Part shown: in pieces, positions 1 to 49,680 of the stretch
Layout of the letters: each line of letters opens with the position of its first letter
How positions within the stretch are numbered: position 1 is the first letter of the stretch
DNA from: Obrimoposthia wandeli
Lineage: Eukaryota
Reading direction: 5' to 3'
DNA: 64,000 bases
Assembly: GCA_977020255.1 (NCBI GenBank)
Contig: CDROCS010003593.1
Span: 62,001-126,000 of the forward strand
Program-made: the position numbers and the translations under genes
The notes under the pieces: model-generated
Databases searched by the model: none
Told to the model about the DNA's origin: nothing
Seen by the model: only the letters and a program-made list of their open reading frames with translations

Positions 1-2221
1 GAGCACACTTGGTACAACCTGTACACTCTTCCTCTATCTCATAAGAAATCAAATCTTCACACTTTCCTGATGGACAAGTCCCCTTTATATGAGCTTCGTA
101 TTCGTGTCTGAAATATTTTAAAGTCGACAGGACTGGATTTGGAGCTGTTTGTCCCAAACCACAAATACTACCTTTTTTCGTATTGATTGCCAATTTCTCA
201 AGTAAATCCAGATCTTCAAGTTTTCCTTTTCCCGATTTAATCTTATCTAGAATTTCGAGCATTCGTCGCGTTCCAATCCTACAGAAAGTACATCTTCCGC
301 AGGATTCTTCCTGAGTAAACGATAAGAAGTAGCGAGCAATATCCACCATACAATCCGATTCGTCAAGAACAATTAGTCCTCCCGAACCCATCATGGCTCC
401 TACTTCTTTCAAAGAATCAAAATCAATTGTAGTATCTGCCATCGAAGCAGGAATACATCCTCCTGAAGGCCCACCAATTTGTACGGCTTTAAATTCTTTT
501 CCATCAGCAATACCGCCTCCAATTTCTTCAACAATTTGGCGAATCGAAATACCCATAGGAACCTCTATCAGTCCACCACGTTTAATTTTTCCCGCCAAAG
601 CAAAAACCTTAGTTCCTTTACTTTTCTCAGTTCCTATCTCACTAAACTTACCTGAGCCATTCCTCAGAATCCAAGGAACAAGTGAGAAGGTCTCCGTATT
701 ATTTATAAGTGTAGGTTGATTCCAAAGTCCTTTTTCTGCTGGATATGGAGGACGCAATTGGGGAATCCCTCTCTTACCTTCAATAGATGCGATTAAAGCG
801 GTTTCTTCACCACAAACAAAAGCACCTGCTCCTTCGAAAATTTCCATATCGAAAGAAAAATCTGATCCTAAAATATTCTTACCAAGAATGCCCTTTTCTC
901 TACATATTTTAATGCCTTCTCGAATTCGCTCTACCGCTAATGGATACTCTGCACGTATATACAAACGTCCTTCAGTCGCACCAACGGCATAAGCTCCAAT
1001 AATAATCCCTTCGATGACGCGGAATGGATAGGATTCTAAAAGCATTCTATCCATAAAGGCACCTGGATCACCTTCATCGCCATTGCAAATAATATATTTT
1101 TGATCTGATTGAGCTTGCTGAACCATTCGCCATTTAATGAAAGATGGAAATCCTGCTCCACCTCTCCCTTTCAAGCCACTCGCTTCAATTTCTTCGATAA
1201 TTTGATCAGGACTGAGTTCTTTCAAACATTTTTCCAATGCTGAAAACCCCTCTTTACTTTTATATTCTTCAAAATCTGAAGGTCGAATTTCACCTCTGTA
1301 TTCAGTAGCAATATTGATTTGTCCTTTAAGGAATTCTGCAATTGGTGTATTTTCTTCACTAACATTATATTGTGATGATGACTTCGGTATATCTGTAAAA
1401 GTTAAGTTCTCAGCATAATTATAGAATCGACTTTTGAATCGATTCATGAGACTGTCAGATTTAAAATGCCTTTGAATAATATCACCAACATCTTCCGACT
1501 TCAGCTTGGTATAATAAACAGCGTCCTCTCCTAACTTGTGAATTTCCATCATGGGCACTTGATTACAAACACCAACACAACCAACCTGTTTCACATCTAC
1601 ATTAATACCACTACTATCCAAAGTCTCTTCTAAGGCTTCTTTTACTCCTGAACTACCACTAGCAATACAACACGATCCTAATCCAATACGAATTTCACCT
1701 TGAGGCAAACCCTTTTCTGAAAGCGTTCTCACCTTTTCCTTACTTCCTGTTCCCTCTTTTAAGAGAAAATCTTCCATAACGTCTTTAACTGTTCCCGTCT
1801 CGACATGACCGTAGGTTACATCGTCGATCTGAACAACTGGTGCCAAAGTGCAACAACCCAAACAGGCTACTTCTTCAAGTGTAAATTTCTTTTGATCATC
1901 GGTACTTTCTCCATCAGGCAAATTTAATTCTCTTCGAAAAGCATCGTAAACCTGGCCAGCCCCTTTTACATGACAAGCTGTTCCAACACACACGCGAACA
2001 ATATGCTCACCTACTGGTTGATGGCGGAATTGAGAATAAAAAGTTGAAATACCTGAAATCTGTGCCTGCGTAATATCTGTGATTTCACAAACACGCTTCA
2101 AGGCCTCTTCGGGTAAATAATTCAGCTCTCCTTGAATCGCTTGAAGAATTGGAATAACCTTTTCGGTTGTCTTCCCTTTTTCCAAAACAATTCTATCGAC
2201 GATATCCTTTATATTATTCAT
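1..2221 (-). CDS. nuoF: NuoE/thioredoxin-like 2Fe-2S/NuoF fusion (HydC-HydB or HndA-HndC-like NAD(P)H diaphorase); 3' end lies outside the window
   Basis: Missing from the ORF track; translated by hand from ATG at 2221 (MNNIKDIVDRIVLEKG). NuoE Cys motifs VRVCVGTACHVKG and EVACLGCCTLAP; second 2Fe-2S domain LGSCCIASG/GCVGVCNQ; NuoF motifs CNGDEGDPGAFMDR, GAGAFVCGEETAL, GGPSGGC, ESCGRCTFCRIG, SICGLG; ferredoxin motif CTGCTKCA at the edge. Confidence 0.9.
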   Translation of the reverse strand, partial: MNNIKDIVDRIVLEKGKTTEKVIPILQAIQGELNYLPEEALKRVCEITDITQAQISGISTFYSQFRHQPVGEHIVRVCVGTACHVKGAGQVYDAFRRELNLPDGESTDDQKKFTLEEVACLGCCTLAPVVQIDDVTYGHVETGTVKDVMEDFLLKEGTGSKEKVRTLSEKGLPQGEIRIGLGSCCIASGSSGVKEALEETLDSSGINVDVKQVGCVGVCNQVPMMEIHKLGEDAVYYTKLKSEDVGDIIQRHFKSDSLMNRFKSRFYNYAENLTFTDIPKSSSQYNVSEENTPIAEFLKGQINIATEYRGEIRPSDFEEYKSKEGFSALEKCLKELSPDQIIEEIEASGLKGRGGAGFPSFIKWRMVQQAQSDQKYIICNGDEGDPGAFMDRMLLESYPFRVIEGIIIGAYAVGATEGRLYIRAEYPLAVERIREGIKICREKGILGKNILGSDFSFDMEIFEGAGAFVCGEETALIASIEGKRGIPQLRPPYPAEKGLWNQPTLINNTETFSLVPWILRNGSGKFSEIGTEKSKGTKVFALAGKIKRGGLIEVPMGISIRQIVEEIGGGIADGKEFKAVQIGGPSGGCIPASMADTTIDFDSLKEVGAMMGSGGLIVLDESDCMVDIARYFLSFTQEESCGRCTFCRIGTRRMLEILDKIKSGKGKLEDLDLLEKLAINTKKGSICGLGQTAPNPVLSTLKYFRHEYEAHIKGTCPSGKCEDLISYEIEEECTGCTKCA

Positions 2222-2311
2222 TATTTCTTTTCAAGTATCAAGTTTTAATAAAGCTTCAAGCATTAGGATAACAAATTTTTCATCATCACATTAACACATC
2301 TTCACATCAAC

Positions 2312-4201
2312 TTACTTTCCTATACAATATAGATTCTTACCTGCACGGATATAAATATGTCCATCTGCAAATGCAGGTGTTGAGTCTGATTTTTCACCTA
2401 GATTTGAAGTCGCAATAGAAACAAACTCCTTATCAGCTTTAAAAATGTGCATACTTCCAGCTCTGTCTAGCAGATATATTTTTTCATCAACCAAAATTGG
2501 TGAAGCGTAAAAACCGTTATCAAATTCATGCTCCCAATACAATTCTCCCGATAGAGCATCGTAACAAGCCACAAGTCCATATGATGTCACAACGAATAAA
2601 TATTTATCCGTTGCTATTGGACTTGGTACATCTGATAAATAATCATAGGCTTCCCAAAGAACTTCAGGATTAGCACCTGTTTTGATGGCTACCAAACTAG
2701 CATATTCGTTAAGAGCAAACACAATTCCATTGGCATAAGCCACAGATGGTCCAACTTCACCAGTAATACAATCAAGCTTCCACAATTCTTCACCAGTTAA
2801 TGCATCGTAAGAAGCCACGCAAGGATCAGCAGCTAATATCACTTCTGCCCTGTCGCCGTTCTGAACAACTACTGGAGATGCCCACGATACTTTTACCTTT
2901 CTATCTGTACTCCATACCTCATCACCTGTTTTAGTCGAAAGAGCCATTACTTTGCCAGATTTTTTATGATCGTATTGTACAATCAGCTTATCTTCAAAAA
3001 CAACTAAGGAAGATGAATGTCCATAATGATTATCAGGTACACCTAAATTCTTAGACCAAACAGGTTTTCCATTCATATCTAAAGCGACTAGATCACCATT
3101 AGAGAAAATGGAAAAAACAAAAGTTCCATCAGTACTTACAGTTGCTGCAGCATGTCCCGTATCAGGAGTCACCTCAGGAGAAGCTAAAGATCCAGCAACA
3201 TTATTAATATCAGCTGTCCATAGTAACTTACCCGAGTTTCGATTGTAGCAATAAACTTGTTTTTTATTTGCATCTGCTCCTGACAAGAATAGTTTGTCAC
3301 CCCAAATTACTGGCGAATTATAGGCATGTAGTTCTGGCGTAACTTTCCACTTTATATTCTTACCAGTAGCCCCATCCCATTCTGTAGGTACATTTTTGTG
3401 GTAAGCAATTCCATTACCACCCGGCCCTCTGAAAGAAGGAAAGTTTGACATCATTGCCTTACTTGGGTATTGCCCTGTATATTTTTTTGCAGCAGGTATT
3501 TTCTTAGCTTCTACAGCTTTTTCAACTGGCTTCGGTTGTGATGTCTCCTCTACAGTTGTCTCGACAGCCTTTTTAGTTTCAACTTTTTCAGCACTTGCTT
3601 CTTCAACAATAGCTTTTTTCTCAATTTCTTTTGGTTTCTCAGTAGCAGTAACAACTGGTGCTTCATTAGCCTTAGTTTCAGCTTTAGCAATTTTTGCAGC
3701 ATCGGTAAATCGTGTACCTATATCTTTATGCGTAACAAAAGCTAATATCAGAGTTACAACAACTAAAACAGATCCTCCAATACTAAGCCATTTTCTAGCA
3801 TTTTGCTGATAGCTGATTATATTTTGACTGTACGCCTCATCGACTGAAGGCAATATTTTTTTGCCCATTCTCATAATCTGCATTGCAATTATCATCACAA
3901 TAAGTGAAAGCAATAAAAGATAAGCTCCTGTTCTTACTTCCCACTGATTGGTGAAAAATGCTTTACGAACTAACAAATCCATTTCTCTGATTTGCTCTCG
4001 CAATTGATTATCATTAGGATTGTCGTTCAATCGTTCAACCAAAGAATTAATCACTTCGGTATTGACAGGATCAACCTTATTAATTTGCATATAGTTGACA
4101 ATAACCATAGCACAAATTAAGATGGCAAAAACACCAGATACTATAGCGACACCTCGCCACAGAGATAGGTTGATTGGTTTATTTGAAAATTTCGTGTTCA
4201 T
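2312..4201 (-). CDS. PQQ-like (BamB-like) beta-propeller protein with 3 N-terminal TM helices and a long charged linker
   Basis: Three hydrophobic segments in the first ~160 aa, K/E/A/P-rich linker, FPSFRGPGGNG motif, repeated docking motifs (ALSTKTGDEVW, YDALTGEELW, YDALSGELYW). Confidence 0.85.
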   Translation of the reverse strand: MNTKFSNKPINLSLWRGVAIVSGVFAILICAMVIVNYMQINKVDPVNTEVINSLVERLNDNPNDNQLREQIREMDLLVRKAFFTNQWEVRTGAYLLLLSLIVMIIAMQIMRMGKKILPSVDEAYSQNIISYQQNARKWLSIGGSVLVVVTLILAFVTHKDIGTRFTDAAKIAKAETKANEAPVVTATEKPKEIEKKAIVEEASAEKVETKKAVETTVEETSQPKPVEKAVEAKKIPAAKKYTGQYPSKAMMSNFPSFRGPGGNGIAYHKNVPTEWDGATGKNIKWKVTPELHAYNSPVIWGDKLFLSGADANKKQVYCYNRNSGKLLWTADINNVAGSLASPEVTPDTGHAAATVSTDGTFVFSIFSNGDLVALDMNGKPVWSKNLGVPDNHYGHSSSLVVFEDKLIVQYDHKKSGKVMALSTKTGDEVWSTDRKVKVSWASPVVVQNGDRAEVILAADPCVASYDALTGEELWKLDCITGEVGPSVAYANGIVFALNEYASLVAIKTGANPEVLWEAYDYLSDVPSPIATDKYLFVVTSYGLVACYDALSGELYWEHEFDNGFYASPILVDEKIYLLDRAGSMHIFKADKEFVSIATSNLGEKSDSTPAFADGHIYIRAGKNLYCIGK

Positions 4202-4480
4202 AATCTTATCTAATTCCTATGTTAGCCACTTCGTGCTCTCTAACTGGGCAATATTTCAAACTTCAGCGAGCACAGAATACATTCAGGGACTCACTTTTCA
4301 TTTCTCGATCTATTTCTTTACCAATTTCAGGCCCCTTTAATGTTTTTCTGTTCTGACGTTTTCCAGTATTTCAGCGTTTTCCACATTCCCCTTAGATATT
4401 GACAAGACATTCCTTTTTTAAACGACTCACTAACACTTCGATATTTCAAGACGGATAAAGACACACCCATTATGCACGCA

Positions 4481-5782
4481 TCAACAGCTAACAGGGCAAT
4501 ATTTTAAACAGCGAGCACAGCTCACACATTCACCTTTATCAGGCGTGTAATCCTCTCGGTATTTAAATACGGACAAGCTTGACAAAGTCAATCCGAAAAC
4601 TAAACCTAAAAAGCCTCCCAAAATCCAAGCTCCGATATAAAACTGCTCTACAATAACTGCTGCCTCGGAATACAATTCTTCAACCGGGGTTCCTGCTGTT
4701 TTAAAAGCTTCTATTTCTACAGATGGTAACATCGCATCTGGTTTGAATAACATCAGTTCATTTGCCAAGCTGACTTTGGTATTTACTTTAGCCAGATTTT
4801 CATGAAAGTTTGAAAGTGTCCATCCTCCCAAAATCATTAATAATGGTATGATCAAGCTCAATCGAATAAATCTTTTGGTTGCTGATGGTCTACCTTCCAT
4901 CACCTTAACAGGAACAGGCTTATTAATGGCTCCCAATGGGCATGAATCTTCACACAAACGACATTGAATACATTTGTTTGGCGTAATGGTAAGATGATGC
5001 TTAGAGAAGCGACTCATCCAATTTAGAAGAACACCATAAGGACAGAAGAAACGACAATAAGGTCGAGCAACAAAAGCACTCAACAAAAGAAAAATAGCGC
5101 CGATAGCAAACATGAAAAAAGTTGCATCGAATCGATAAATTCCTATAAAAGGATCGTATCTACATATAATAAAATCGGTAGCCGTAGCTGCGTATAGAAC
5201 TGATAAACCCAAATAGATATAGGGAATTAAACCCAGAACTTTCTGCAACCATGTTTTCATTGTAACAGGGCGCAAAAGAAGCACATCTTGAATGGCTCCT
5301 AAGGGGCAAACGCCTGCACAAAATGTTCGTCCAAAAAATAAGGTGTACACAAGAGGAATGACAAAAAATGCCAATGCTGATATCGGAATGCTATACTCAG
5401 GTTGGAAAAGCGCTAAAGTCACATTTTGCAATGATCCCACGGAACAAACACAGCCTTCTCGAAAAAAACCGAAATAAAGAATAGAGAATACTGACACAGC
5501 TAGAACACCTCGTCTTGAACGCTTCTTTAAAATCAGCCAAGTGATTAATGAAAGAGCCAAAATAAGAATAAAGACATCGAAAAGAGCAAAGAAATCTGAG
5601 CGGGCGTCAGGCATTGAAGTCACAGGTTGTGTATAACCTGACTCGAACTCTGGTTTCGGGAATCGCTGCTGTTGTGCAAAAAGAGGAAAACCTGAAGTCA
5701 TTAATAAAATGAACATAGATAGCATGGTGACAAGCTTCTTTATATTCCAGGTTTGTGTTACGTATTTTAAAATTTCTGACAT
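4481..5782 (-). CDS. Membrane polyferredoxin, NapH/MauN/YccM-like 4Fe-4S binding protein
   Basis: Multiple TM helices; GCVCSVGSLQ, FCAGVCPLGAIQ, YCRFFCPYG, CIQCRLCEDSCP, CVSCARCLKYCP. Extreme C-terminus uncertain because of the adjacent noisy duplication. Confidence 0.85.
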   Translation of the reverse strand: MSEILKYVTQTWNIKKLVTMLSMFILLMTSGFPLFAQQQRFPKPEFESGYTQPVTSMPDARSDFFALFDVFILILALSLITWLILKKRSRRGVLAVSVFSILYFGFFREGCVCSVGSLQNVTLALFQPEYSIPISALAFFVIPLVYTLFFGRTFCAGVCPLGAIQDVLLLRPVTMKTWLQKVLGLIPYIYLGLSVLYAATATDFIICRYDPFIGIYRFDATFFMFAIGAIFLLLSAFVARPYCRFFCPYGVLLNWMSRFSKHHLTITPNKCIQCRLCEDSCPLGAINKPVPVKVMEGRPSATKRFIRLSLIIPLLMILGGWTLSNFHENLAKVNTKVSLANELMLFKPDAMLPSVEIEAFKTAGTPVEELYSEAAVIVEQFYIGAWILGGFLGLVFGLTLSSLSVFKYREDYTPDKGECVSCARCLKYCPVSC

Positions 5783-5812
5783 TAAGAAATCTGTTTAAGG
5801 TATTGAAATAGG

Positions 5813-6382
5813 TTAGCCTTTCTTTTCTTTTTTGAAGCCTGAAAACTTATAGGGCTCATCAGCTGGCACACGTGAAAAAGCATCAGAAGGACAATCACGA
5901 GCAATGGCACATTGATTGCAATTCACACATACATCATGACTTACCTGCAACTGAAGTGATCCATTTCCAAAAGCGCCACAACCTTTCACACATTTGCCAC
6001 AGCCGATACACAAGTCTTCAATTATTTCGTATTCAAAGAATGGATCTTCGATATACTTTCTTTTAATTGCGCCAGTTGGGCAAAGTTGATTTTCAGCACC
6101 AGTTGTAATATTCTTCACATTAGGACGAAGGTAGCCACCACATAAATCGCAATAGCCACACATATCGTAAACATGAATACATTTCACCGCAGAGGGAGTC
6201 ACTACGCATGAAGTTGCACAACGTCCACATTGCGTACACTTCGTTGTATCAATTTGCCAAAGCGTATTTCCCGACACGGTTTTATGAGCCAAAACACCCG
6301 TCACCCCAACCAAACTTGCTCCTGCCGCAAAGCGAAAACACGTGTTGATAAAATCTCTTCTATTTTTTTCTTTCTCAGCCAT
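5813..6382 (-). CDS. Tat-exported multi-[4Fe-4S] ferredoxin (NapG/MauM-like role)
   Basis: NRRDFIN twin-arginine signal; CTQCGRCATSC, CGYCDLC, CPTGA, CIGCGKCVKGC, CVNCNQC...CP. Confidence 0.85.
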   Translation of the reverse strand: MAEKEKNRRDFINTCFRFAAGASLVGVTGVLAHKTVSGNTLWQIDTTKCTQCGRCATSCVVTPSAVKCIHVYDMCGYCDLCGGYLRPNVKNITTGAENQLCPTGAIKRKYIEDPFFEYEIIEDLCIGCGKCVKGCGAFGNGSLQLQVSHDVCVNCNQCAIARDCPSDAFSRVPADEPYKFSGFKKEKKG

Positions 6383-6393
6383 TCTACTACAAA

Positions 6394-6597
6394 TTATTGT
6401 ATCGAATTTTTCTTTCTATAATCAATCCCATCAGGCAAAGTACAGCCTTTATTTTTTTTACAATTACGACATACAAAATCGAAATCACAGCCTCCTTCAG
6501 AATTCATGCTTCTATAAATCATTGTTCCTGAAAAAATAGCCAATGCACTTAAAATTGTTCCTCTTCCGATATTATGCAAAAATGCTCTTCTATCCAT
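6394..6597 (-). CDS. Small twin-arginine protein with a 4-Cys cluster (67 aa)
   Basis: MDRRAFL plus hydrophobic stretch; C-x5-C-x2-C-x6-C; tightly spaced within the operon. Confidence 0.7.
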   Translation of the reverse strand: MDRRAFLHNIGRGTILSALAIFSGTMIYRSMNSEGGCDFDFVCRNCKKNKGCTLPDGIDYRKKNSIQ

Positions 6598-6648
6598 CTT
6601 ATTTTATTTTATCTCGAATGAATCCGAGATAATTTAAATTTGTCTTGT

Positions 6649-7614
6649 TTATTCTTTCAACTCAAAAATTCGAACCATTTTTCTTGATGGATCTAAAACA
6701 ATGATTCTATCATTAGAATCTACTGCTAAATCCAAACCTGCGGTTCCAGCGTCGAATTGATTGGGAGCTGCAACAACCGATTTAAAATCGCCTGATGGTA
6801 AATGAATCTTTATTCTCTCCAAACCTTTCTCACTTGTCACAAATGATCCGTCTGATAACATGGCCACATGACTTGGATTACAACAACCTCCAAAACCATC
6901 GATTTGCATTGATGTTCGTTCCCAGGTCGATATCAAATCACCTTTATCATTATAAGCCTCCAGAGCATGTCGACCAGGATTCACAACCCAAAGCTCACCT
7001 TGACGACCAAACATGAGATCAAAATAGGGGCTCGGGATCACAAAACCTCTAATCCCTTTTTCAAGATTCTTAGCTCCAATATTATTAATCTTCTTTCCAT
7101 CTATTGTATACTGATAAACGATTTTCTGTCCCGCATCTGCTATATAAACAACACCATCCTTTTCAGCGATACTGCTGATATAGGCTTTTGTTCCTTTGAT
7201 TTGAAAACTATTATTTAATCCACCGTTTGGCTTACGAACATCGACCCTATTTCCAACACCCAAGAGGATATTGCCTGATTCAGAGATACTAACAGAATGA
7301 GCATCGCCTCTTACTTTCATACTCGATTGAACTTGCCCTTGCATATCAAAAATCCAAAGCTTATCGGTTCCACTCACATAGATTCTATCTTCCGCATCTA
7401 ATGCAAGTCCGAATACAGATTCTGAATTAATTTTAAAAGATGATACTTCCTTATAAGCAATCAATGATGAATCGACTTTCCTCAATTCCTTAAGATCGTA
7501 TTCATAAATATTCTGTTGAGGTTTTGGTTTCTCAAAAAACAAGTCACCCGCTATTAAGCCCACCAAAAGCAGAAGGAGTACAATCGAAAATATTAATGTC
7601 AGCTTGTTCTTCAT
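6649..7614 (-). CDS. NHL-repeat-like beta-propeller protein with N-terminal membrane anchor
   Basis: N-terminal TM; repeats like GLALDAEDRIYVS, VYIADAGQKIV, LAVDSNDRIIVLD; GFGGCCNPSHV motif. Confidence 0.75.
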   Translation of the reverse strand: MKNKLTLIFSIVLLLLLVGLIAGDLFFEKPKPQQNIYEYDLKELRKVDSSLIAYKEVSSFKINSESVFGLALDAEDRIYVSGTDKLWIFDMQGQVQSSMKVRGDAHSVSISESGNILLGVGNRVDVRKPNGGLNNSFQIKGTKAYISSIAEKDGVVYIADAGQKIVYQYTIDGKKINNIGAKNLEKGIRGFVIPSPYFDLMFGRQGELWVVNPGRHALEAYNDKGDLISTWERTSMQIDGFGGCCNPSHVAMLSDGSFVTSEKGLERIKIHLPSGDFKSVVAAPNQFDAGTAGLDLAVDSNDRIIVLDPSRKMVRIFELKE

Positions 7615-7639
7615 AATCTCTTATTTTCAAAGTCCAATC

Positions 7640-9067
7640 TTAATTTGCACGCAAATCGATACAAAGCATGTGTTTTGAATCTCGCATCAACAATCGGCCA
7701 TCCGTTATCACCATCGGCCCCCAAGCATCATGACCATCTATAAGCTTCACTTTATCGAGCAATTCGAATTTCTCAGTCGAGGCTCGGGCTATGGTCAATT
7801 CACCATTATCTTTAAGGATAAAGAATTTACCATCAGCCACTAGATAAGGACCTAAACCGAAACGATCAGTCTTACCACTTGTCCACAAAATTTTAGTACA
7901 ATCGTTAGGATCGCAACAGACAAATTGGTTACGCATTGCTCCTGCATCCTTTGGAAGAATAGTAAACATGCGTCCTTTATATAAAAGTGGCGTTTGTTGT
8001 TCTGATGCCATCCCGTCTTTGGGCTTGTATTTCTGTAAGGTTTCAACTTGATATATTCCACCCACTTTCTTCACTTGAAAAAGAGCGCCACCGGCACCAT
8101 ATCCTGCAGTCATATATACTTTACCATCACCATAAATCAACGGAGATGGAGCAACTACTGAAGGAGAAAAATCTTTTGTCTTCCATAGAATTTGCCCAAG
8201 ATCGTCGCCTTCGGCTGATACACCACAAATTCCACCTACTGCAGCATAAACCCACATTTTCTTTCCATCAAGAACCATTGGCATTATAGAAGAGTGCGAC
8301 ATTTTCCATCCATCAGGATTAGGTGTTTCCCACAAAACCTTACCTGTAGCACAATCAACGCCAATAAGCAGAGCTTTACCTCCAGGTGCAATTATGGCAA
8401 CATTGTTATCGATAATTGGACATTGCCCGGTATACCAAAAAGGAATTTCGGATTGATATTCTTTGACCAAATCCAATCCCCACAAGAAATCTCCTGATTC
8501 AGGATTCACACACATCACATGGCAACGTGGCCCCATACTCACAATATATTTATCATTTATTGCAGGAATGGTTCTCGACATACCGTGATTTCTCTTCACA
8601 TGAACCTTATAAGATCGTTTCCAAATCTCTTCGCCAGTCTCCAAAGAAAAGCATCGAAGAGCATCTGCCTTTTTCACCTCATCATAGTCAAGCAAATAAA
8701 CCTTACCATTATAAACGACAGGAGCAGCATGTCCTTCACCTAAATCTTGTTTCCACAAAATCTTTGGCTCAGGTCCAATCTTATCTACAAGCTTTATTTT
8801 TTCTTTCGAAACATTATCAAAATCTGCACCTCTAAACTGAGTCCATTTACCTGTTAAACTTGAAGTGTGCTCAGTATAGGATATAAATTTCTCACCAATA
8901 TTTACCACATCGACAGCTTCGGTTCCAGCTTTAGGACGATTATCCAAGCCCGGCACACTTGCTGAGAAATCTTGAACTGGATCGTATCTCAACCAAGAAA
9001 CAAATATTGAAATGGCTATAACAACAGCCAAAGTCAGGAAAAGAATATTTAAGAATTTTTTATTCAT
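7640..9067 (-). CDS. PQQ-like beta-propeller protein, N-terminally anchored
   Basis: N-terminal TM; WTQFRG; CFSLETGEEIW, CVNPESGDFLW, VDCATGKVLW docking repeats. Confidence 0.85.
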   Translation of the reverse strand: MNKKFLNILFLTLAVVIAISIFVSWLRYDPVQDFSASVPGLDNRPKAGTEAVDVVNIGEKFISYTEHTSSLTGKWTQFRGADFDNVSKEKIKLVDKIGPEPKILWKQDLGEGHAAPVVYNGKVYLLDYDEVKKADALRCFSLETGEEIWKRSYKVHVKRNHGMSRTIPAINDKYIVSMGPRCHVMCVNPESGDFLWGLDLVKEYQSEIPFWYTGQCPIIDNNVAIIAPGGKALLIGVDCATGKVLWETPNPDGWKMSHSSIMPMVLDGKKMWVYAAVGGICGVSAEGDDLGQILWKTKDFSPSVVAPSPLIYGDGKVYMTAGYGAGGALFQVKKVGGIYQVETLQKYKPKDGMASEQQTPLLYKGRMFTILPKDAGAMRNQFVCCDPNDCTKILWTSGKTDRFGLGPYLVADGKFFILKDNGELTIARASTEKFELLDKVKLIDGHDAWGPMVITDGRLLMRDSKHMLCIDLRAN

Positions 9068-9078
9068 GGAAATGCAGA

Positions 9079-10326
9079 CTATGCTTTAATATTATAAGCC
9101 ATCAAGGCATCTTCGTGACGCACATATAGAATACCATCTTTTATAACTAAATGCGACCAATGTGGCCCTTTACCCAAAGGCACTTTAAAAGAACTAATAA
9201 CTTCAAATCCGTCGGGACTTGCTTTGGACAATGCGATATTTCCACCTTTTTCATCGTAGCAATACAACATGCCTTCAGCAGATATTATTGAGCCTTTATT
9301 TTCCCATTCTGTCTCATACATAGACTTGCCTGTTTCCCACTCTAAGCAAACCCATTTACCCATTCGGTTGTGCACCCAGTTAGAACCATAAACATAGTCG
9401 CCTAAGCGAACAGCACCACCATGATGTACATCTAATAAAGAATCAACATAGGCCAATTTTACCGAAGAAGCATCTTCGCTTAAATCAAGCATTACCGATT
9501 TATGATCGTATCCATTTGTTACGAATATCTTTCCATTATAATAAAGCGGTGTATTGGTTTGAATATTTGCTTTCCATTCTCCACCAGCATATTCTGCATA
9601 ATTGAAAGTCCAGATAATCTCACCACTTTCAGGATTAACGCCTATGACATTATTTTCTGTAACAGTAACAATCAATTTCGTTCCATTACGATCAACCATA
9701 AGAGGCGAAACATAGCCTGGCTTGTCTTTTAAACTTTTAGATTGCCAAACAGTTTCACCCGTTAGTTTATTTAAAGCAACCATAGTCGTTTTCTCACCAC
9801 AAGGTGTATAATAAACGTAATCATTGTGTAGTAAAAGAGATTCTGAAATTCCCCATTGACCATATGTTCCTTCGAATTTCTCACTCGCCTTTACTTGCCA
9901 AAAGATATCTCCTGTTAGGGCATTCAAACAAGCTAAATCACCTTTCCCACTTGAAAGATAAATCCTATCATTTTCAATAGTTGGTGTACAACGACTATCC
10001 GGGAATGAACTATCCCAACAACGACCATAAGGCACTTCCCATTTAAGTTGACCTTTCATATCAACAGCCATCAAAACATCCATTGAATCTTTAATTCCAG
10101 TTAAGTAAACAACATCATTCACCACTGCAACTGAAGAATAACCTTTCGGTATATCAACCAATGACCACAACATTTCTGGTCCTTCTTTAGGCCATTCTTT
10201 CAACAAGCCTGTTTCATTGTAAACACCAGTTCTGTTTGGCCCACGCCATTCACTTTTTTGTTTTGGAGAGTTACATTGAGTAAAAACAGTTATGGCTACC
10301 AAGCCAAGTAAAAGCAGTCGTTTCAT
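9079..10326 (-). CDS. PQQ-like beta-propeller lipoprotein
   Basis: Lipobox-like VFTQC; EWRGPNRTG; CLNALTGDIFW, ALNKLTGETVW repeats. Confidence 0.85.
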   Translation of the reverse strand: MKRLLLLGLVAITVFTQCNSPKQKSEWRGPNRTGVYNETGLLKEWPKEGPEMLWSLVDIPKGYSSVAVVNDVVYLTGIKDSMDVLMAVDMKGQLKWEVPYGRCWDSSFPDSRCTPTIENDRIYLSSGKGDLACLNALTGDIFWQVKASEKFEGTYGQWGISESLLLHNDYVYYTPCGEKTTMVALNKLTGETVWQSKSLKDKPGYVSPLMVDRNGTKLIVTVTENNVIGVNPESGEIIWTFNYAEYAGGEWKANIQTNTPLYYNGKIFVTNGYDHKSVMLDLSEDASSVKLAYVDSLLDVHHGGAVRLGDYVYGSNWVHNRMGKWVCLEWETGKSMYETEWENKGSIISAEGMLYCYDEKGGNIALSKASPDGFEVISSFKVPLGKGPHWSHLVIKDGILYVRHEDALMAYNIKA

Positions 10327-10534
10327 TTGTATATTTTTAATCTTCTTTATTATCAGAATGAGATATTTATTTTTAAATAAATGAGTGTTTCAAATCTATC
10401 AATTCCACAAGCAATTTTAATAAATAACAAGCTCGTTAACATTCGGTTAACAAGAAGCAATTCTTAATTAATCTAAAGAAGAATAGTATTCAGATTGAGT
10501 CTTATTAAGATAAGGGATTGACTCGTATTTAAAA

Positions 10535-11740
10535 CTAAATTTCGTAAACCATAAATGCACCACCATGACGAACATACATTCTGTTTTTATGAATCACCAA
10601 GTGTGCCCAATGCTGTTTAGTCCCCATTGGAACTCTAAAGAAACTCACTTTATTGAATTCTCCATTTTTGATATCGATCAAACCAATTTCACCATTATCG
10701 CCATAGCAATACAACATACCATCAGCAAAAATCACATTTCCTTTAGCTATTGCCTTTGATGAATAAATTTCCTCACCAGTTTTCCAATCGATGCAATACC
10801 ACATACGATTTTTATGTCCTGACACGTATATTTTACCATCGACTAATACAGCACCCCCCATTTGATTATCAACGAATGTATTTCGCCACATCTCTCTTAC
10901 TGACGATCCATCTTCGGATAACTGAAGCATGACACCACCTTTGCCGTAACCACTAAAACAAAACAATTGTCCATCTTTATATAAAGGTGTGTTTGGATGA
11001 ATATCATACATATTCTTATGCTCAAAACTCCAAAGCATCTTTCCATTCTTAATATCAATTCCAATAATTGAACCAGCAGTATGCGTAACCAAAAGTGAAC
11101 GATTTCCTCGCTTCACTAATAAAGGAGAACAATAAGCTGACTTCTCGCCCATTGCTTTTGTTTTCCAAATCAAATCACCGGTTTTTTTATTTACGGCAAT
11201 CACATTAGTCTCTTTACCACCTGGCGTACTGAATAACATATCGCCTTCGATTAAAAGATTTTCAGTCATTCCAAAACGAAGGTTTCTACCACCATATTCT
11301 GTCAACAAATTTTTAGACCAAACCTTCTCTCCATTTTCTGCAGACATAGCCACCAATTCTCCATGCCCACTCATCATATACAAAAGACCGTCATTCAACA
11401 ATGGCGTACCTCGTACACCATCATAATTATCCATCCACTCTTTTGCGTAGTTCTTTTTCCACAGTTGCTTTCCTGAATGATCAAAAGCAATAATGAAACC
11501 TTGATCTCCATCAACACCTCCAGTATATACAACATCATCTGTTACTGTAGCCGACGCATGTCCATCTCCTAAAGCATCAAAACTCCACAATAACTTTGGC
11601 CCAGCCTCAGGCCATTTCTTCAATAAATCTTTGGCATCATATTTACCATCACGATCAACACCTCTCCACTGCATAATTTCCTGAGAATGCGACTGGAAGA
11701 CAAACAAAATACTGGCTACGAATAAGAAAAGAGATCTCAT
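10535..11740 (-). CDS. PQQ-like beta-propeller protein with cleavable signal peptide
   Basis: Signal peptide ending QSHS-Q; QWRGVDRDG; AMSAENGEKVW, AVNKKTGDLIW repeats; clear paralogue of 9079-10326. Confidence 0.85.
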   Translation of the reverse strand: MRSLFLFVASILFVFQSHSQEIMQWRGVDRDGKYDAKDLLKKWPEAGPKLLWSFDALGDGHASATVTDDVVYTGGVDGDQGFIIAFDHSGKQLWKKNYAKEWMDNYDGVRGTPLLNDGLLYMMSGHGELVAMSAENGEKVWSKNLLTEYGGRNLRFGMTENLLIEGDMLFSTPGGKETNVIAVNKKTGDLIWKTKAMGEKSAYCSPLLVKRGNRSLLVTHTAGSIIGIDIKNGKMLWSFEHKNMYDIHPNTPLYKDGQLFCFSGYGKGGVMLQLSEDGSSVREMWRNTFVDNQMGGAVLVDGKIYVSGHKNRMWYCIDWKTGEEIYSSKAIAKGNVIFADGMLYCYGDNGEIGLIDIKNGEFNKVSFFRVPMGTKQHWAHLVIHKNRMYVRHGGAFMVYEI

Positions 11741-11910: not shown

Positions 11911-11941
11911 AAGGGCTAGCTGAAATAATCAACTAGCCCTT
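11911..11941 (-). terminator. Intrinsic terminator after the methyltransferase gene
   Basis: aagggctag...ctagccctt inverted repeat, followed by a T run on the minus strand. Confidence 0.7.
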
Positions 11942-15254: not shown

Positions 15255-17372
15255 GTGCAAATAAAAAACGACATCATGTGGCGAGTGGGCGTCTGTTACA
15301 CTCTAATTGTACTTTTCGCATTCTGTGTGGTTAGCCGAGTTGTTTACCTGCAAGTTTTCGAAGGAGATGAATGGAGAGGCCGTGCACAATCTATCAGCAA
15401 AAAAGATATTACTGTTTATGCAAACAGAGGTGATATTTGTGCAGCTGACGGTCGTCTTTTGGCTAGCTCTATACCATACTATGAGTTACGAATGGATTTC
15501 CAGGCTCCTGGCTTAACGAATGCTATTTTCAAGAAAAATGTAGATTCTTTAGCGCTTTGTTTATCTAAATTTTTCAAAGATAAAAGCAAATCTAATTACC
15601 GCAGACAACTTTGGGATGCCAAATTCCACTCTAAAAGAAACCGATACGTTTTGATTAATCACCGAAAGGTGAATTACAACGAACTAAAACAAATAAAAAC
15701 ATTTCCCCTTTTCAGATTATCATCCAACAAAGGAGGTCTAATCTGCTTACACGAAAGCAAAAGAGTTCAACCACATATCAACCTTGCTAGTCGTACAATT
15801 GGTTATTTGAATAAAGGAAATGGCAACGAACTTATAGGAAAAGTCGGTCTTGAAGGTTTATTTGAAAATGAACTAAAAGGAATCGACGGCATTTCCATGA
15901 TGCAAAAAATGTCGGGCAAATGGCTACCTGTCAATCAAGCTGACCCTAAGGATGGTAACGATATCATTACAACCATTGATGTCAATTTTCAAGATGTTGC
16001 ACAAACAGCCCTTTTACAACAACTTCAAAAATATCATGCTGATCATGGAACAGCAATACTAATGGAAGTTGAAACAGGAGCTATAAAGGCAATCGCCAAT
16101 TTAGGATTAGATAGAAAGAAAAACCGCTATCTAGAAATTTACAATTATGCCATAGGTGAGCTTAACTGAACCAGGATCTACGTCAAACTGGCTTCGATGA
16201 TGGCTTTACTTGAGGATGGTTATGTTGAACCTACAGATTCAATCGACACAGGCAATGGTGTTCATCGCTTTTATAAAGATAAGATGCGTGACTCACATAT
16301 TGGAGGCTATGGTAAAATAAGCGTACAACAGGCCTTCGAAAAATCGTCGAATGTAGGGATATCAAAACTCGTCAATCAATTTTACAAAGATAGACCTCGA
16401 GATTTTATTAATCGCTTATACCATTTCAGGCTGAACAAAACCTTAGAATTGGATATTAAAGGTGAAGGTCAACCTAAAATTAAATTTCCTGGGGAAGAAG
16501 GCTGGTCAGGTATTTCACTTCCCTGGATGTCCATTGGTTATGAGGTACAGCAAACACCTCTTCAAACATTGAGCTTTTATAATGCCATTGCCAATAATGG
16601 TAAAATGATGCAGAGCTAGTTTTAGTTATGAATCAAATATCATGGAAAAGTACTGCAGGATTTTGATGAAGAGGTTTTAAAACGTAGCCTTTGCTCAAGA
16701 GAGACCTTAAGAAAGGTGAGATCGATGCTCGAAGGTGTTGTTTTGAGAGGAACAGCAACAAATCTTAAGAATTCGAGTTATAGTATTGCAGGTAAAACAG
16801 GAACAGCCCAAATAGCTGACAAAAATAAGGGTTACGGAGTCAAAGTTTATCAAGCTTCATTTGTAGGTTATTTCCCTGCTGATAATCCAAAATACTCATG
16901 CATTGTTGTTATCAACAGTCCAGATAAAACGAAAGGTTTCTATGGAAATCAAGTTGCGGGACCAGTTTTCAAAACAATTGCAGATAAGGTATACGCTATG
17001 ACTTATGCCATGCATCCTCCGAAACATGATGAACAGGTCCTAGAAATCAAAGTACCAATCTCTTTGAATGGTAACAAAGATGACTTGGACAAAGTTTTTA
17101 AAGAACTTGATGTACCAACTGATGATCGTGACGTTTATAGCGATTGGGTTTTAACATCGCGTCAAGATTCTATAATCAAATACAAAAACAGAACGATAAA
17201 CAATCATTTAGTTCCTAATGTTAAAGGAATGGGATTGCAAGATGCTCTATATATTCTAGAAAATGCAGGATTGAAAGTTACAACTAGTGGTTTTGGCTCA
17301 GTGAAAAAACAGTCAATTCGCCCTGGTTCAAATTTTCGATCTGGTACTAGAATTAAAATAGAGTTATCCTAA
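15255..17372 (+). CDS. ftsI: Penicillin-binding protein FtsI/PBP3 with C-terminal PASTA domain (split by frameshifts)
   Basis: ORF pieces 15255-16169, 16197-16619 and 16716-17372 carry RGDI..DGR, EPGST (broken), SSN, KTGTAQ and the PASTA motif VPNVKGM. Confidence 0.9.
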
Positions 17373-18874: not shown

Positions 18875-20128
18875 ATGTTGTACTATCTATTTAAATACCT
18901 ACATGGATTAGATTTCCCAGGAGCTGGGATGTTTGATTACATTTCATTTCGTGCTGCATTGAGTATCATCACATCACTCTTAATTGCCACTGTATTTGGA
19001 AAAAAAATCATTTACTATCTGCAAAAACAACAAATTGGTGAGATTGTAAGAGATCTTGGTCTTGCAGGACAAATCGAGAAAAAAGGAACACCTACAATGG
19101 GTGGAATCATTATTCTAATTTCTATTCTCGTTCCTGTTTTATTATTCGCCAAACTCGATAACATCTATATTATCCTGATGATTATCACAACAGTTTGGCT
19201 AGGATTAATTGGCTTCATTGACGATTATATTAAAGTCTTCAAGAAGGACAAAGAAGGCTTAAAGGGACGATTCAAGATTGCAGGACAAGTAGGTTTAGGT
19301 TTAATTGTAGGCTTAACTCTATATATGAATGATGATGTGGTTATTCGTGAAAGGGCCAATATTTATGACATTGGAACTCAAACGGAGGTTGTTGACGAAG
19401 GCTTTACAGCTGATAGTGCTAACGCAACAGCAATGACTCATGATATAAAGTCAACGAAAACGACTATCCCATTCTTTAAAAACAACGAGTTCGATTATGA
19501 AGACTTAGTTCGTTGGGGAGGTGAATATTCAGGGATCCTAGCTTGGATACTCTTTATTATTGTCACCATATTTATTGTTACAGCAGTTTCCAATGGCGCT
19601 AATATGACAGATGGACTAGACGGACTCGCAACGGGAACATCAGCCATCATAGGTGCCACACTTGGTATCTTAGCTTACCTTTCGGGTCACTTAGTTTATG
19701 CCAGTTATCTAGATATCATGTATATTCCTCACTCAGGTGAGCTGGTTGTTTATATCGCTGCATTTATTGGATCTACTATTGGTTTCCTATGGTACAACTC
19801 CTATCCTGCTCAAGTTTTCATGGGAGATACAGGAAGTCTTTCATTGGGAGGAATTATTGCAGTTTTAGCAATTATCATTCATAAAGAGCTATTAATACCT
19901 GTACTATGCGGTATTTTCTTGGTAGAAAATCTTTCTGTTATGATGCAAGTTTCATGGTTTAAGTATACAAGAAAAAGATACGGTGTAGGTCGTCGAATAT
20001 TCAGGATGGCACCTCTTCACCACCATTATCAATTAAAGGGATATCCTGAAGCTAAAATTGTAACTCGATTTTGGATTATCGGTATTTTCTTGGCAGTAAT
20101 CACAATCGTGACTCTTAAAATCAGATAA
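18875..20128 (+). CDS. mraY: Phospho-MurNAc-pentapeptide transferase MraY
   Basis: [33 protein letters not shown]. Confidence 0.97.
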
Positions 20129-21470
20129 ATGAATAGTCAGAAAACCATAGTTGTTTTAGGTGCTGGAGAAAGTGGTGTTGGTGCAGCTATACTTGCTAAA
20201 AGCAAAGGCTTTAATGTATTTGTTTCCGACAAGGGACAAATCACGGCAGGCTACAGTAAAATTCTGAACGAATACAATATTCCTTTCGAAGAAGGAAAAC
20301 ATAGTGAAGATCGTATTTTAGAAGCCATCGAGGTCGTTAAAAGCCCTGGCATTCCAGACAGCCCACCTATGTTAAAACTAAACGATTTAAACATTCCTGT
20401 AATCTCAGAAATTGAGTTTGCTGGCCGTTATTCGGATGCTAAAATGATTTGCATCACAGGTAGTAATGGAAAAACCAATATCAACACTGTTATTTACCAC
20501 AGTTAAAAAGCTGGGTATAAAATAGATTTAGTTGCAATACTTGGTCACAGTTTACTGTCAGGTTTTGCTTTGAAAACATTACAGCCAATTAGCTAGTTTG
20601 AGCCGGGCAGTTTTCTCAACTAGATGGTATGCAGCAACTACAGCTTTATATCACATACTAATGAACATCACTCCTGACCATCTGGATCGATACGATTATA
20701 AGATGGGGAATTATATTGATTCTAAATTCAGAATCATTCAAAATCAGACTGAGAATGATGCTTTCATTTTCTGTCATGATGACGAAATCATAACAAAAGA
20801 GCTTCAACAAATATCAGTGCAAGTTCAAAAGCATCCATTTAGTATTTATGAATGTTTACCAAAGGGGGCAAGTTTGAAAAATGATGATTTAATTATTAAG
20901 AATGAAAACATCAATCTTAATATGAAACAAACTGAACTTTCCCTAAAAGGAAAGCACAACACTTACAACTCAATGGCTGCAGGAATCGCAGGTAGTATTC
21001 TTGGTATCCGTAAAGAAGTTATCAGAGAAAGCTTAAGTGATTTTGAAGGTGTAGAACATCGCCTTGAGATGCTACCAAATGTTCGTGGTGTTGAATTTAT
21101 AAATGATTCAAAAGCAACAAACATTAATTCTACATGGTATGCTCTAGAAAGCATGAACGACGAAACAGTCTGGATTGTTGGTGGTGTGGATAAAGGCAAT
21201 GACTATTCTGAGTTAATGGACTTAGTTAAAGAAAAAGTAAAAGCTATCGTATGCTTGGGAGTTGATAATTCTAAAATCCATAAAGCCTTCGATGGTGCTA
21301 TCGATACAATTGTAGATACACAATCGATGCATGATGCTGTGAAAATAGCTTATGAATTAGCAAATGAAGAGGCTATTGTTCTTTTATCTCCAGCATGTGC
21401 AAGTTTCGATTTGTTCAAGAGTTACGAAGATAGAGGCGATCAATTTAAAGAAGAAGTGCGAAAATTATAG
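20129..21470 (+). CDS. murD: UDP-MurNAc-L-Ala:D-Glu ligase MurD (garbled at ~20480-20670)
   Basis: LGAGESG, KSPGIP, ITGSNGKT, NITPDHLDRY, NDSKATN, SPACASFD; internal frameshifts. Confidence 0.92.
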
Positions 21471-44219: not shown

Positions 44220-44376
44220 AGTTGTTTTTTATCCGTATCTAACTAATAAACAAGTTATTTATCGCACAGACGAACTTTGAACTTCGGAAATAACTCATAA
44301 AAGTGATTTTCCAGAGCTTAAGCTATGTGCTACATTCATGTCGTTTTTCAAATCAACATAGTAAGCAACATAGGAT

Positions 44377-44697
44377 ATGCATTCAAATGTAATAAAATTC
44401 GGCAAACCTGTTTTAACAAATGAGATTGAATCTAATTCAATCAACTTAAGTCAAAAGCAATCTCTTAATAAAATGATACTAGATAAACTCTCTGTTATTT
44501 TAGGTCAGGATGTAAATAAGGGGTTGAAAATGATTGAGCAATTAATCAGCAAAGAAGAAATGCTTGCTTTTAAATCTGAGCTTGAAACTAAAACCACATT
44601 AAAACATCAAGTCGCTTATCAATCTATAAGTAATAATGGACGCCTTAATAATCTAAAGTCTTGTTTCGAGGGACTTTCGGCAGATAGCATTTTGTAG
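44377..44697 (+). CDS. Hypothetical protein (106 aa)
   Basis: Fills the gap divergent from the 44219 start; protein-like composition; no recognised family. Confidence 0.45.
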   Translation: MHSNVIKFGKPVLTNEIESNSINLSQKQSLNKMILDKLSVILGQDVNKGLKMIEQLISKEEMLAFKSELETKTTLKHQVAYQSISNNGRLNNLKSCFEGLSADSIL

Positions 44698-44963
44698 AAT
44701 TTAAAATATCAATAAATCTATTTTTCAAGCTTATAGCTTTAAACAATGCAAAAGGTCGATACAAAGCTATAAGAATTTGAAAAGTCGGTTTAACGGTGCC
44801 TAGGTAATCTAAGTAGTTTACCCTCTGCTTAGGGCGTCTAACTATTAACCAAATCTGAGGAATACTAAGCTGTGAGGATAGTGAATTAATTGCTTCGTAG
44901 GGTCAATTAGATATAATTGTGAATCATCCCTTCTGTTAGAATTAGTAGTTTATTTCTGAAGCA

Positions 44964-45647: not shown

Positions 45648-45677
45648 AAAAATACAAATTATTACTTATGACAAACA

Positions 45678-49030: not shown

Positions 49031-49048
49031 TAGATTTCTATCGGTTGA

Positions 49049-49549: not shown

Positions 49550-49626
49550 GACTGTGTGAATAAATGGTTCCCTTAAATTTAATCTATTTTTTAGATAAAG
49601 AACTGAAATCTAGTGATTATATAGAT

Positions 49627-49666
49627 ATGGAATAGTAATCAGCAAATTTGCTGACCGCTATTCCAT
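49627..49666. terminator. Hairpin between the lipoprotein and ECF genes
   Basis: atggaatag...tcagca/tgctga...ctattccat. Confidence 0.6.
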
Positions 49667-49680
49667 CTCTCACCTAAAAC

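Follow-up and report, generated by a model that had tools for sequence, protein, structure and literature searches.

Bfu enzymes couple NAD and ferredoxin to a third redox couple of intermediate, low potential (PMC11829005). The described complexes closest to the genes reported here are NfnABC and StnABC (PDB 9bov, 8oh5, 9n5u; PMC11829005, PMC12018979), and membrane-bound Bfu complexes, Mbh-Bfu and Nuo-Bfu, were predicted earlier (PMC9304861). A second related group comprises the NapGH, NosGH and MauMN pairs of Fe-S proteins, each a four-cluster Tat ferredoxin with a Fer4_5 membrane polyferredoxin, and the wider NapH/NosR/RdhC module. In this group NapH binds the periplasmic NapG, and the first Cys motif of NapH is also needed for contact with the cytoplasmic Fe-S protein NapF (PMC5928378). 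Here we describe a gene cluster at positions 1-11740 of a 64,000-nt stretch of DNA from contig CDROCS010003593.1, assembled for Obrimoposthia wandeli (“the window”), that has features of both groups. We propose, with a probability of roughly 0.55, that its nine genes and the part of the unit lying downstream encode one membrane-spanning, periplasm-facing Bfu-type redox complex.

Open reading frame (ORF) calls and Pfam/NCBIfam profile searches placed nine genes in the cluster, all on the minus strand, and the Pfam matches agreed with the gene content given in the original prediction. Numbered in transcription order, and with the two noncoding features that bear on the unit, they are:

11911-11941, minus strand: hairpin terminator of the upstream methyltransferase gene, 13-bp stem with 6 GC pairs and a T-run
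10535-11740, minus strand: g1 (p1), 401 aa, Sec signal, exported PQQ_2/BamB-like propeller of the eight-blade type
9079-10326, minus strand: g2 (p2), 415 aa, PQQ_2 propeller with a lipoprotein-type N-terminus (hydrophobic leader with a Cys at its end)
7640-9067, minus strand: g3 (p3), 475 aa, PQQ_2 propeller with an N-terminal anchor
6649-7614, minus strand: g4, 321 aa, six-blade NHL propeller with an N-terminal anchor
6394-6597, minus strand: g5 (sTat), 67 aa, twin-arginine (Tat) protein with four Cys
5813-6382, minus strand: g6 (TatFd), 189 aa, twin-arginine ferredoxin
4481-5782, minus strand: g7, 433 aa, NapH-like membrane polyferredoxin
4202-4480, minus strand: spacer between g7 and g8, 279 nt
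2312-4201, minus strand: g8 (p4), 629 aa, three transmembrane helices, a linker and a PQQ_2 propeller
1-2221, minus strand, running past base 1: g9, NuoE-[2Fe-2S]-NuoF fusion, 740 aa inside the window

Because the strong terminator closes the methyltransferase gene just before g1, the unit starts at g1. From g1 to g9 the intergenic gaps are 208, 11, 25, 51, 11, 30, 279 and 90 nt. Apart from g9, which is cut by the window edge, all of the genes are intact and full-length compared with their orthologues; g9 itself is open for 740 codons, its last ~40 residues being encoded past base 1. The cluster has a GC content of ~38%. As judged by g7, which is 96% identical to a protein from a Marinifilaceae metagenome-assembled genome and 92-93% identical to those of Ancylomarina species, the cluster-bearing DNA is assigned to an Ancylomarina-like member of the Marinilabiliales.

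Comparison with related genomes extended the unit past base 1. In Ancylomarina subtilis and Labilibaculum manganireducens, the NuoEF gene is followed by genes for a GltD-like protein (503-515 aa), a fifth PQQ_2 propeller, a LolD-like ATP-binding cassette (ABC) ATPase, a 1094-aa duplicated FtsX/MacB-type permease, a sixth propeller, a ferredoxin-domain protein (280-286 aa) and a radical S-adenosylmethionine (SAM) enzyme. We located the part of this set from the ABC ATPase onwards at L089:10001-20678 (Ancylomarina), L083:10001-20699 (Labilibaculum) and L088:11576-17657, with permeases of 1094-1118 aa and ferredoxins of 269-286 aa. For the ATPase the nearest match was LolD, below the cut-off (243 bits vs 308), and the radical SAM protein exceeded the cut-off of no curated peptide-maturase family (best 70 bits vs 525). 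By this comparison the unit contains at least 15 genes, of which the nine in the window are roughly the first two-thirds; the nine-gene operon of the original prediction was too small.

To measure conservation we used a one-genome-per-species scan, which returned at least 584 relatives of g7. The best 80 of these loci, all from Bacteroidota and with g7 identities of 50-96%, were compared by BLASTP with reference proteins, and the denominators given below count the loci long enough to judge. TatFd lies upstream of g7 in 67/67 loci, and the NHL protein, p3 and at least one p1/p2 copy do so in 66/67. Downstream of g7, p4, NuoEF and the GltD-like protein were each found in 54 of 55 loci, and the fifth propeller was present in 48 of 50. 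Gene order was kept in about 98% of the 80 genomes, and recurrence at these frequencies in related loci puts the arrangement far beyond chance. The median apparent gap was 3 nt both for p4 to NuoEF and for NuoEF to the GltD-like gene; these gaps are lower bounds, as ORF starts were taken at the most upstream position possible.

Five distant loci of 52-71% GC (L084 to L088) were also compared. In four of them the NapH-like protein is joined to p4 (NapH::p4). L084 carries TatFd, NapH::p4 and NuoEF up to the contig end. In L085, p3 and the NHL gene lie divergently beside TatFd, NapH::p4, NuoEF and the GltD-like gene, with neither ABC genes nor p1/p2; a relative of its fusion protein is labelled Planctomycetota. 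L086 reads FtsX, p3, NHL, small Tat protein, TatFd, NapH::p4, NuoEF, GltD-like, propeller. L088, at 71% GC, has the full set through ABC ATPase, FtsX, propeller, ferredoxin and radical SAM enzyme, with 4-nt gene overlaps, and L087 has only p3, NHL, small Tat protein, TatFd, NapH and p4, followed by unrelated genes. Thus L085, L086 and L088 (59-71% GC) keep p3, NHL, TatFd, NapH::p4, NuoEF and the GltD-like gene, with overlaps of 1-4 nt. The core shared across phyla therefore consists of p3, the NHL protein, both Tat proteins (the small one and TatFd), the NapH-like protein and p4; in three of the four distant loci that are informative, it is joined by NuoEF and the GltD-like gene. The synteny of propeller genes with Fe-S genes and NuoEF, on which the original prediction depended, was therefore found both in the 80 Bacteroidota genomes and in most of the informative high-GC loci.

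The cytoplasmic end of the cluster is Bfu-like. Pfam searches with g9 matched 2Fe-2S_thioredx at the N-terminus (173 bits), Complex1_51K (144 bits) and NADH_4Fe-4S (116 bits), and the protein is a NuoE-NuoF fusion equivalent to BfuC plus BfuB, unlike NfnABC and StnABC, where the two are not fused. A full-length orthologue has 781 aa and ends in a 2x[4Fe-4S] domain, the last motif of which is cut by base 1 in the window. This orthologue is nearest to NfnB (archaeal, Caldicellulosiruptor NfnABC), StnB and HydB of bifurcating hydrogenases (E 1e-187 to 8e-210); the solved structures most like it are NfnB 9n5u_B (E 8e-210), 9bov_B and Stn 8oh5_B, and it aligns over ~600 residues to NfnB/StnB (E 1e-206 to 8e-210). 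Like those proteins it keeps the FMN/NADH site and the Cys ligands of C1, B5, B1, B3 and B4 (cluster names follow the Bfu literature, PMC11829005), which are at least 98% conserved in 60 orthologues. The C1 [2Fe-2S] site (C78, C83, C120, C124) is invariant and the B1 [4Fe-4S] site (C641, C644, C647, C687 in L001 numbering) 100% conserved; the B5 [2Fe-2S]-type site lies in a second thioredoxin-like stretch (C184, C185, C215, C219), and the eight C-terminal Cys of B3/B4 (2x[4Fe-4S]), at 733-773, are at least 98% conserved. Respiratory NuoF has neither B5 nor B3/B4. NAD(P)H binding, as first proposed for g9, was too broad: the NuoF NADH/FMN site is present but NADPH binding is not evident.

The GltD-like protein encoded after NuoEF in the relatives resembles BfuA, and we refer to it as BfuA'. 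It matches Fer2_4, Fer4_20 and part of Pyr_redox_2. Orthologues are 428-563 aa long, compared with 963-1178 aa for NfnA/StnC; they align to residues 3-288 of NfnA/StnC, resume at ~414/452 and end at the equivalent of NfnA ~671. In 53/53 orthologues a stretch of only 27-39 residues replaces the NADPH-binding subdomain of NfnA (~125-165 residues), and G-[S/N] stands in place of the GD motif. All 53 keep the FAD GxGxxG motif, and a single GxGxx[GA] motif was found in 50/54. The regions aligned with NfnA/StnC cover the [2Fe-2S], the GltD-type clusters, the FAD fold and further clusters; Cys ligands are retained for a [2Fe-2S] cluster, both GltD-type clusters, one more [4Fe-4S] cluster and a Cx2CxCx5C site.

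We considered whether NuoEF and BfuA' form an NfnABC/Stn transhydrogenase and rejected this, because the NADPH-binding subdomain and the whole Fdh-like domain are lost in all 53 orthologues. With both domains gone, BfuA' would lack a substrate site of its own and is thus predicted to be a flavin-bearing wire with no evident substrate site. The two proteins together are best classed, from their sequences, as a Bfu-family member other than the Nfn/Stn transhydrogenase, and such a module would need another redox partner. Also unlike NfnABC/StnABC, their genes directly follow membrane and periplasmic genes in nearly all of the Bacteroidota loci. The GltD relative that had been suggested as a possible downstream gene was therefore found, and it does bring the unit close to a characterised complex without making it that complex. 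Transhydrogenase is thus an unsuitable annotation for the “Nfn-type” Bfu genes of Bacteroidota, because the NADPH-binding domain is missing.

The membrane component, g7, scored 55.6 bits with Fer4_5 (cut-off 22) and also matched Fer4. As in NapGH, NosGH and MauMN, it is a membrane module with two CX3CP and two 4Fe-4S motifs: the CX3CP motifs (C155/C159 and C243/C247) are invariant, as are two CxxCxxCxxxCP motifs at 271-281 and 419-429. It is unlike them in that its signal peptide looks cleavable, its periplasmic N-terminal part contains an invariant motif, and an extra transmembrane hairpin splits the 4Fe-4S motifs; it also lacks the FMN domain of NosR. Its scores fell below both curated models, TIGR02163 for NapH/MauN (48.1 bits vs a cut-off of 213) and the NapH equivalog (42.5 vs 234). 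The description of g6 and g7 as a NapG- and NapH/MauN-type pair consequently holds for their architecture but not for the curated family.

After its signal-like N-terminus, g7 has hydrophobic segments at 67-85, ~93-107, 132-150, 182-200, 220-238, 305-323 and 383-401, or about seven transmembrane helices. Hydropathy and charge place both CX3CP and both 4Fe-4S motifs in K/R-rich, cytoplasmic loops, and place an acidic loop (324-382), C111, C113 and C207 on the opposite, periplasmic side. The 4Fe-4S motifs of g7 are thus predicted to be cytoplasmic, with TatFd and the propellers outside. A cytoplasm-to-periplasm link is indicated by this topology; the earlier term “trans-envelope” was too strong.

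A search of 1.84 billion representative sequences for relatives of g7 gave 388 representative clusters (50% identity) at E<=1e-30. Ten of the top 150 are ~970-1136 aa long. In one of these longer proteins (P0124) the NapH-like part is fused to p4, including the three-helix anchor, with p4 C-terminal (34% identity, E 2e-124); other long variants (P0131, P0299, P0132) had no informative extra domain. Fer4_5 and PQQ_2 occur in one polypeptide in 14 clusters at 90% identity. This natural fusion fits the predicted topology, because the C-terminus of g7 and the N-terminus of p4 would both be inside and the propeller outside.

Both exported Tat proteins begin with RR-x-F motifs. TatFd (g6) has 18 Cys, of which 16 are invariant, arranged in four CxxCxxC...C(P) motifs with several Fer4 family matches; the pattern is consistent with four [4Fe-4S] clusters and, with the Tat signal, resembles the partner proteins of the NapGH group. 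No NapG/MauM model was among the 15 NCBIfam hits at E<=0.01, and PDB sequence searches with g6 and g7 returned generic ferredoxin motifs alone, with no solved relative. The mature part of g5 is ~35-40 aa and has four Cys spaced C-x6-C-x2-C-x5-C, flanked by acidic residues and followed by L-P-[ED]. There was no Pfam or NCBIfam match to g5. It is conserved: a strict scan found a small ORF with RR and Cys between the NHL and TatFd genes in 43/77 loci, and genes of 74-81 aa are called at this position in L086, L087 and L088. A PqqA-like reading of g5, suggested by an E-x3-Y-like spacing, was dropped since the aromatic position is often Phe or His.

On the periplasmic side, PQQ_2 (PF13360, cut-off 27.6 bits) matched g1 (97.3 bits), g2 (73.1 bits) and g8 (100.9 bits), with all four PQQ_2 propellers, including g3, in the range 68-101, and g4 matched NHL (PF01436) at 28.1 bits (cut-off 20). 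The p1/p2 proteins are a paralogue group that varies from one to five copies per locus. The best-conserved propeller is p3: in an alignment of 59 sequences the mean column identity is 65%, and 82 columns, many of them polar, are invariant, including K158-R159-N160-H161-G162, M256-S257-H258 and E356-Q357-Q358, and its orthologues in the loci of 52-71% GC are 38-47% identical. In p4, transmembrane helices at 17-35, 92-110 and 139-157, with a conserved first loop, are joined to the propeller by a Lys/Glu/Ala-rich linker, and 94 residues are near-invariant. The NHL protein has an invariant vicinal Cys pair in the motif G243-C244-C245-N246-P247.

Structural models gave no transferable function for either p3 or the NHL protein, fold searches with the two returning generic propeller matches only. 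The AlphaFold model of p3 (pLDDT 90.7) was most similar to BamB, tetrathionate hydrolase and PQQ alcohol dehydrogenases; these share its eight-blade fold (TM ~0.55-0.6, query-normalised) and differ from it in sequence (~15% identity) and curated scores. The g4 model (pLDDT 93.7) is a standard six-blade NHL fold, with TRIM2/3 NHL as its best match (TM 0.7-0.8), followed by PAL and Vgb lyase. The original prediction called the four propellers PQQ-like, and their PQQ_2/BamB-like nature was borne out. Quinoprotein identity could not be demonstrated, TIGR03075 giving only 23-55 bits against a cut-off of 480, and no pqq genes are present in the 64-kb window. BamB identity was likewise rejected (TIGR03300, 27-75 bits vs 285), the similarity being at the level of fold alone.

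The docking, electron path, direction and substrate that we infer for the complex are as follows. In the cytoplasm, g9 would act as the BfuC+BfuB core, with its NADH/FMN site and a ferredoxin-facing 2x[4Fe-4S] end, and would pair with the truncated BfuA-like protein encoded just past base 1 as a connector. This module may dock on the cytoplasmic 2x[4Fe-4S] domain of g7, for which the NapH-NapF contact gives a precedent, as it shows a cytoplasmic Fe-S partner docking on a NapH-type protein. From there g7 would carry electrons through the inner membrane to g6, the four-cluster ferredoxin exported by Tat, and g6 would hand them on to an assembly of tethered p4 (g8), p3 (g3), the NHL protein with its vicinal Cys pair (g4) and g5, with the variable-copy p1/p2 (g1, g2) as putative accessories. 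Because the third couple of Bfu enzymes has an intermediate, low potential, outward delivery of low-potential electrons is favoured, and most likely NADH and reduced ferredoxin would jointly reduce a low-potential periplasmic acceptor. Our tentative guess is that this acceptor is a disulfide, or an inorganic or organic sulfur species, at the Cys-Cys site.

A stronger form of this proposal is that the cluster encodes the first electron-bifurcating Bfu enzyme with its third substrate outside the cytoplasm, the BfuBC core being wired through a NapH-type polyferredoxin and a Tat ferredoxin to a periplasmic catalytic module of several propellers. We regard this stronger form as rather doubtful. The active site of such a module might include the NHL vicinal Cys pair and a 4-Cys mini-subunit that is radical-SAM-matured or metal-binding. 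The earlier predicted Mbh-Bfu and Nuo-Bfu complexes also have Bfu core genes within membrane-protein operons and are likewise proposed to reach their third substrate via membrane subunits (PMC9304861). Their modules are ion-pumping ones of the complex-I/Mbh type and their substrates H2 or quinone, unlike the present cluster, in which a NapH-type polyferredoxin and a Tat ferredoxin face periplasmic propellers.

Several points weigh against a single complex. The support comes from sequences and structure models. The 80 Bacteroidota loci are mutually related and were chosen as best hits, so that their agreement overstates their independence. In L087 neither NuoEF nor the GltD-like gene adjoins the core, and the membrane/periplasmic module is therefore separable from the Bfu genes or perhaps independent of them; this one locus tempers the electron-conduit interpretation of the original prediction, which the synteny, the NapH::p4 fusion and the topology otherwise favour. 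Spacing within the window is loose between g7 and g8 (279 nt) and between g1 and g2 (208 nt, with a weak hairpin). No catalytic cofactor site can be recognised in the propellers, which in structure come closest to a scaffold (BamB) and to generic propeller enzymes. To our knowledge, there is no known cofactor that carries electrons across the bilayer from the cytoplasmic clusters of NapH-family proteins. Members of that family are generally held to be quinol dehydrogenases (PMC5928378).

The main rival, which we consider possible but unlikely, holds that the cluster encodes two co-regulated, separate machines: a NapGH-like menaquinol dehydrogenase (g6 and g7), and a soluble Bfu-type NADH/ferredoxin oxidoreductase with a cytoplasmic third substrate. 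The first would feed or maintain a periplasmic propeller enzyme, as NosGH/NosR do for NosZ and MauMN maybe do for methylamine dehydrogenase, and the adjacency of the two would reflect shared regulation only. NapH and its relatives are held to draw electrons from the quinol pool (PMC5928378), every structurally characterised Bfu enzyme matched here is a soluble complex, and L087 has the membrane/periplasmic genes on their own. Moreover, NuoEF is nearest to Nfn-type BfuB, and Bacteroidetes BfuB was earlier placed in the Nfn clade (PMC9304861). On the other hand, BfuA' has lost the sole known substrate site of Nfn-type BfuA in every orthologue aligned. The order p4, NuoEF, BfuA' with overlapping stop and start codons is found from ~38% GC, as in the window, to 71% GC, and the junction between the two halves does not vary among loci while the flanking genes do.

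Two weaker explanations were also considered. The more substantial of these, which we think improbable, is that the cluster serves mainly to mature and export a small modified protein or a cofactor derived from a peptide. In this scheme the radical SAM enzyme would cross-link g5, which would be handled by the ABC pair of the MacB type and come to sit in a propeller, an arrangement resembling that of the small, Cys-rich subunits in quinohemoprotein amine dehydrogenase or methylamine dehydrogenase. The reducing power delivered by the Fe-S and Bfu proteins would go into maturation instead of respiration-like turnover. A radical SAM enzyme and a ferredoxin (270-286 aa) do follow the ABC-FtsX-propeller genes in L089 (Ancylomarina), L083 (Labilibaculum) and L088 (71% GC), and g5 is conserved, with acidic residues beside its Cys. 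The mau cluster likewise has a propeller subunit, a small Cys-rich exported subunit and the MauM/MauN pair. More broadly, the nos, mau and qhp clusters, in which a periplasmic propeller enzyme goes with an accessory electron-transfer protein or radical SAM maturase, a small Cys-rich subunit or an ABC transporter, seem to follow a similar overall plan: the present cluster, too, combines exported propeller(s) with a membrane Fe-S protein of the NapH/NosR type, ABC genes and, further on, a radical SAM enzyme. However, its propellers are of the PQQ_2 and NHL families and not NosZ, MauB or QhpB, and no Cu, heme or quinone-forming genes are present. With its Tat signal g5 needs no ABC exporter, and it lacks both Trp and a conserved Tyr, from which a known quinone cofactor could be made. 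The radical SAM protein lies below every curated peptide-maturase cut-off, and the ABC and radical SAM genes are absent beside the core in L085 and L087.

The last explanation, that the propellers are non-catalytic BamB-like envelope scaffolds in a cluster for outer-membrane or lipoprotein biogenesis with the Fe-S genes minor or regulatory, is very unlikely: although the best fold matches of p3 are BamB chains, the ABC ATPase is nearest to LolD and g2 resembles a lipoprotein, the BamB model scores far below its cut-off (75 vs 285 bits), many of the invariant columns of p3 are polar or charged as is typical of an active or binding site, and neither the strict linkage to ~10 Fe-S sites and two flavin sites nor the covalent p4-polyferredoxin fusion is explained.

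All parts of the proposed Bfu-type complex come from known superfamilies, and none of its proteins scores high enough with a curated family to be given a specific name. The combination, the truncated BfuA and the NapH::propeller fusion are new to the open-access literature that we searched: no description of them was found there or in curated family libraries, in keeping with the original prediction that no characterised system has this composition. A survey of Bfu enzymes does not mention the cluster, and Bacteroidetes BfuB appears in it only within the Nfn clade (PMC9304861). The cluster is strongly conserved in marine and sediment Bacteroidota (anaerobic) and also occurs in some high-GC bacteria. 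If the coupling is real, anaerobic polysaccharide degraders would have an unrecognised electron sink or source, and an old question, the role of the cytoplasmic Fe-S clusters of NapH/NosR-type proteins, would become testable. If, in addition, the third substrate lies outside the cytoplasm, fermentative anaerobes could dump or harvest very low-potential electrons at the cell surface, and these long-puzzling clusters would gain a function.

Two features of the unit in the window call for comment. The spacer between g7 and g8, at 279 nt, compares with 25-43 nt in the closest relatives (L001, L003, L004); its extra ~240 nt had no repeat copy in the window or fetched loci and matched no Rfam family. 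A weak terminator-like hairpin (10432-10454, minus strand; 9 pairs, 3 GC) follows g1 within the g1-g2 gap, which in A. subtilis is the same size, and g1 may be partly uncoupled from the remaining operon.

Genes next to the unit differ among the related loci. In Ancylomarina and Labilibaculum, a DUF116-polyprenyl synthase fusion and prenyltransferase/squalene-cyclase-like repeat proteins are encoded past the radical SAM enzyme. A Bat-like aerotolerance set (TPR, BatD and two VWA proteins) adjoins the cluster on the opposite strand at L086:18575-23057 (minus strand), possibly by coincidence, and sulfatase and FGE-sulfatase genes lie directly upstream of p3 on the same strand at L087:2918-5233 (plus strand).

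The remaining ORFs of the window are housekeeping genes (dcw cluster, MiaB-like, LepA, RNase III, FabF, LeuRS and others). As originally stated, nitrate reductase, methylamine dehydrogenase, pqq and hydrogenase genes are lacking: our survey of these ORFs found no nap, mau, pqq or hydrogenase genes in the 64 kb, and no genes for NapA, NosZ or methylamine dehydrogenase were found in the window or in the related loci examined.

Two genes in the dcw region are broken. The ftsI/penicillin-binding protein (PBP) gene at 15255-17372 (plus strand) has in-frame interruptions, a TGA at 16167 and a TAG-TTT-TAG-TTA-TGA run at 16617-16631, that divide it into three ORFs (PBP_dimer; Transpeptidase; Transpeptidase plus PASTA), while the A. 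subtilis gene is single and encodes 705 aa. Either the sequence is of poor quality here or an essential gene has become a pseudogene. Similarly, murD at 20128-21470 (plus strand) looks frameshifted, with its N-terminal ~125 codons in one frame to ~20504 and Mur_ligase_M/C (20598-21470) in another. Several broken essential genes outside the cluster suggest that the consensus sequence is imperfect.

Elsewhere, a region on the minus strand at 42701-50598 contains genes for an extracytoplasmic function sigma factor (49049-49549) and a FecR-like anti-sigma factor (48158-49030), followed by an 827-aa ORF (45678-48161); this ORF and three nearby ORFs of 227-306 aa had no Pfam match at E<=1e-5. A tRNA gene at 63416-63489 on the plus strand (RF00005, 59 bits) was the sole Rfam family match in the window.

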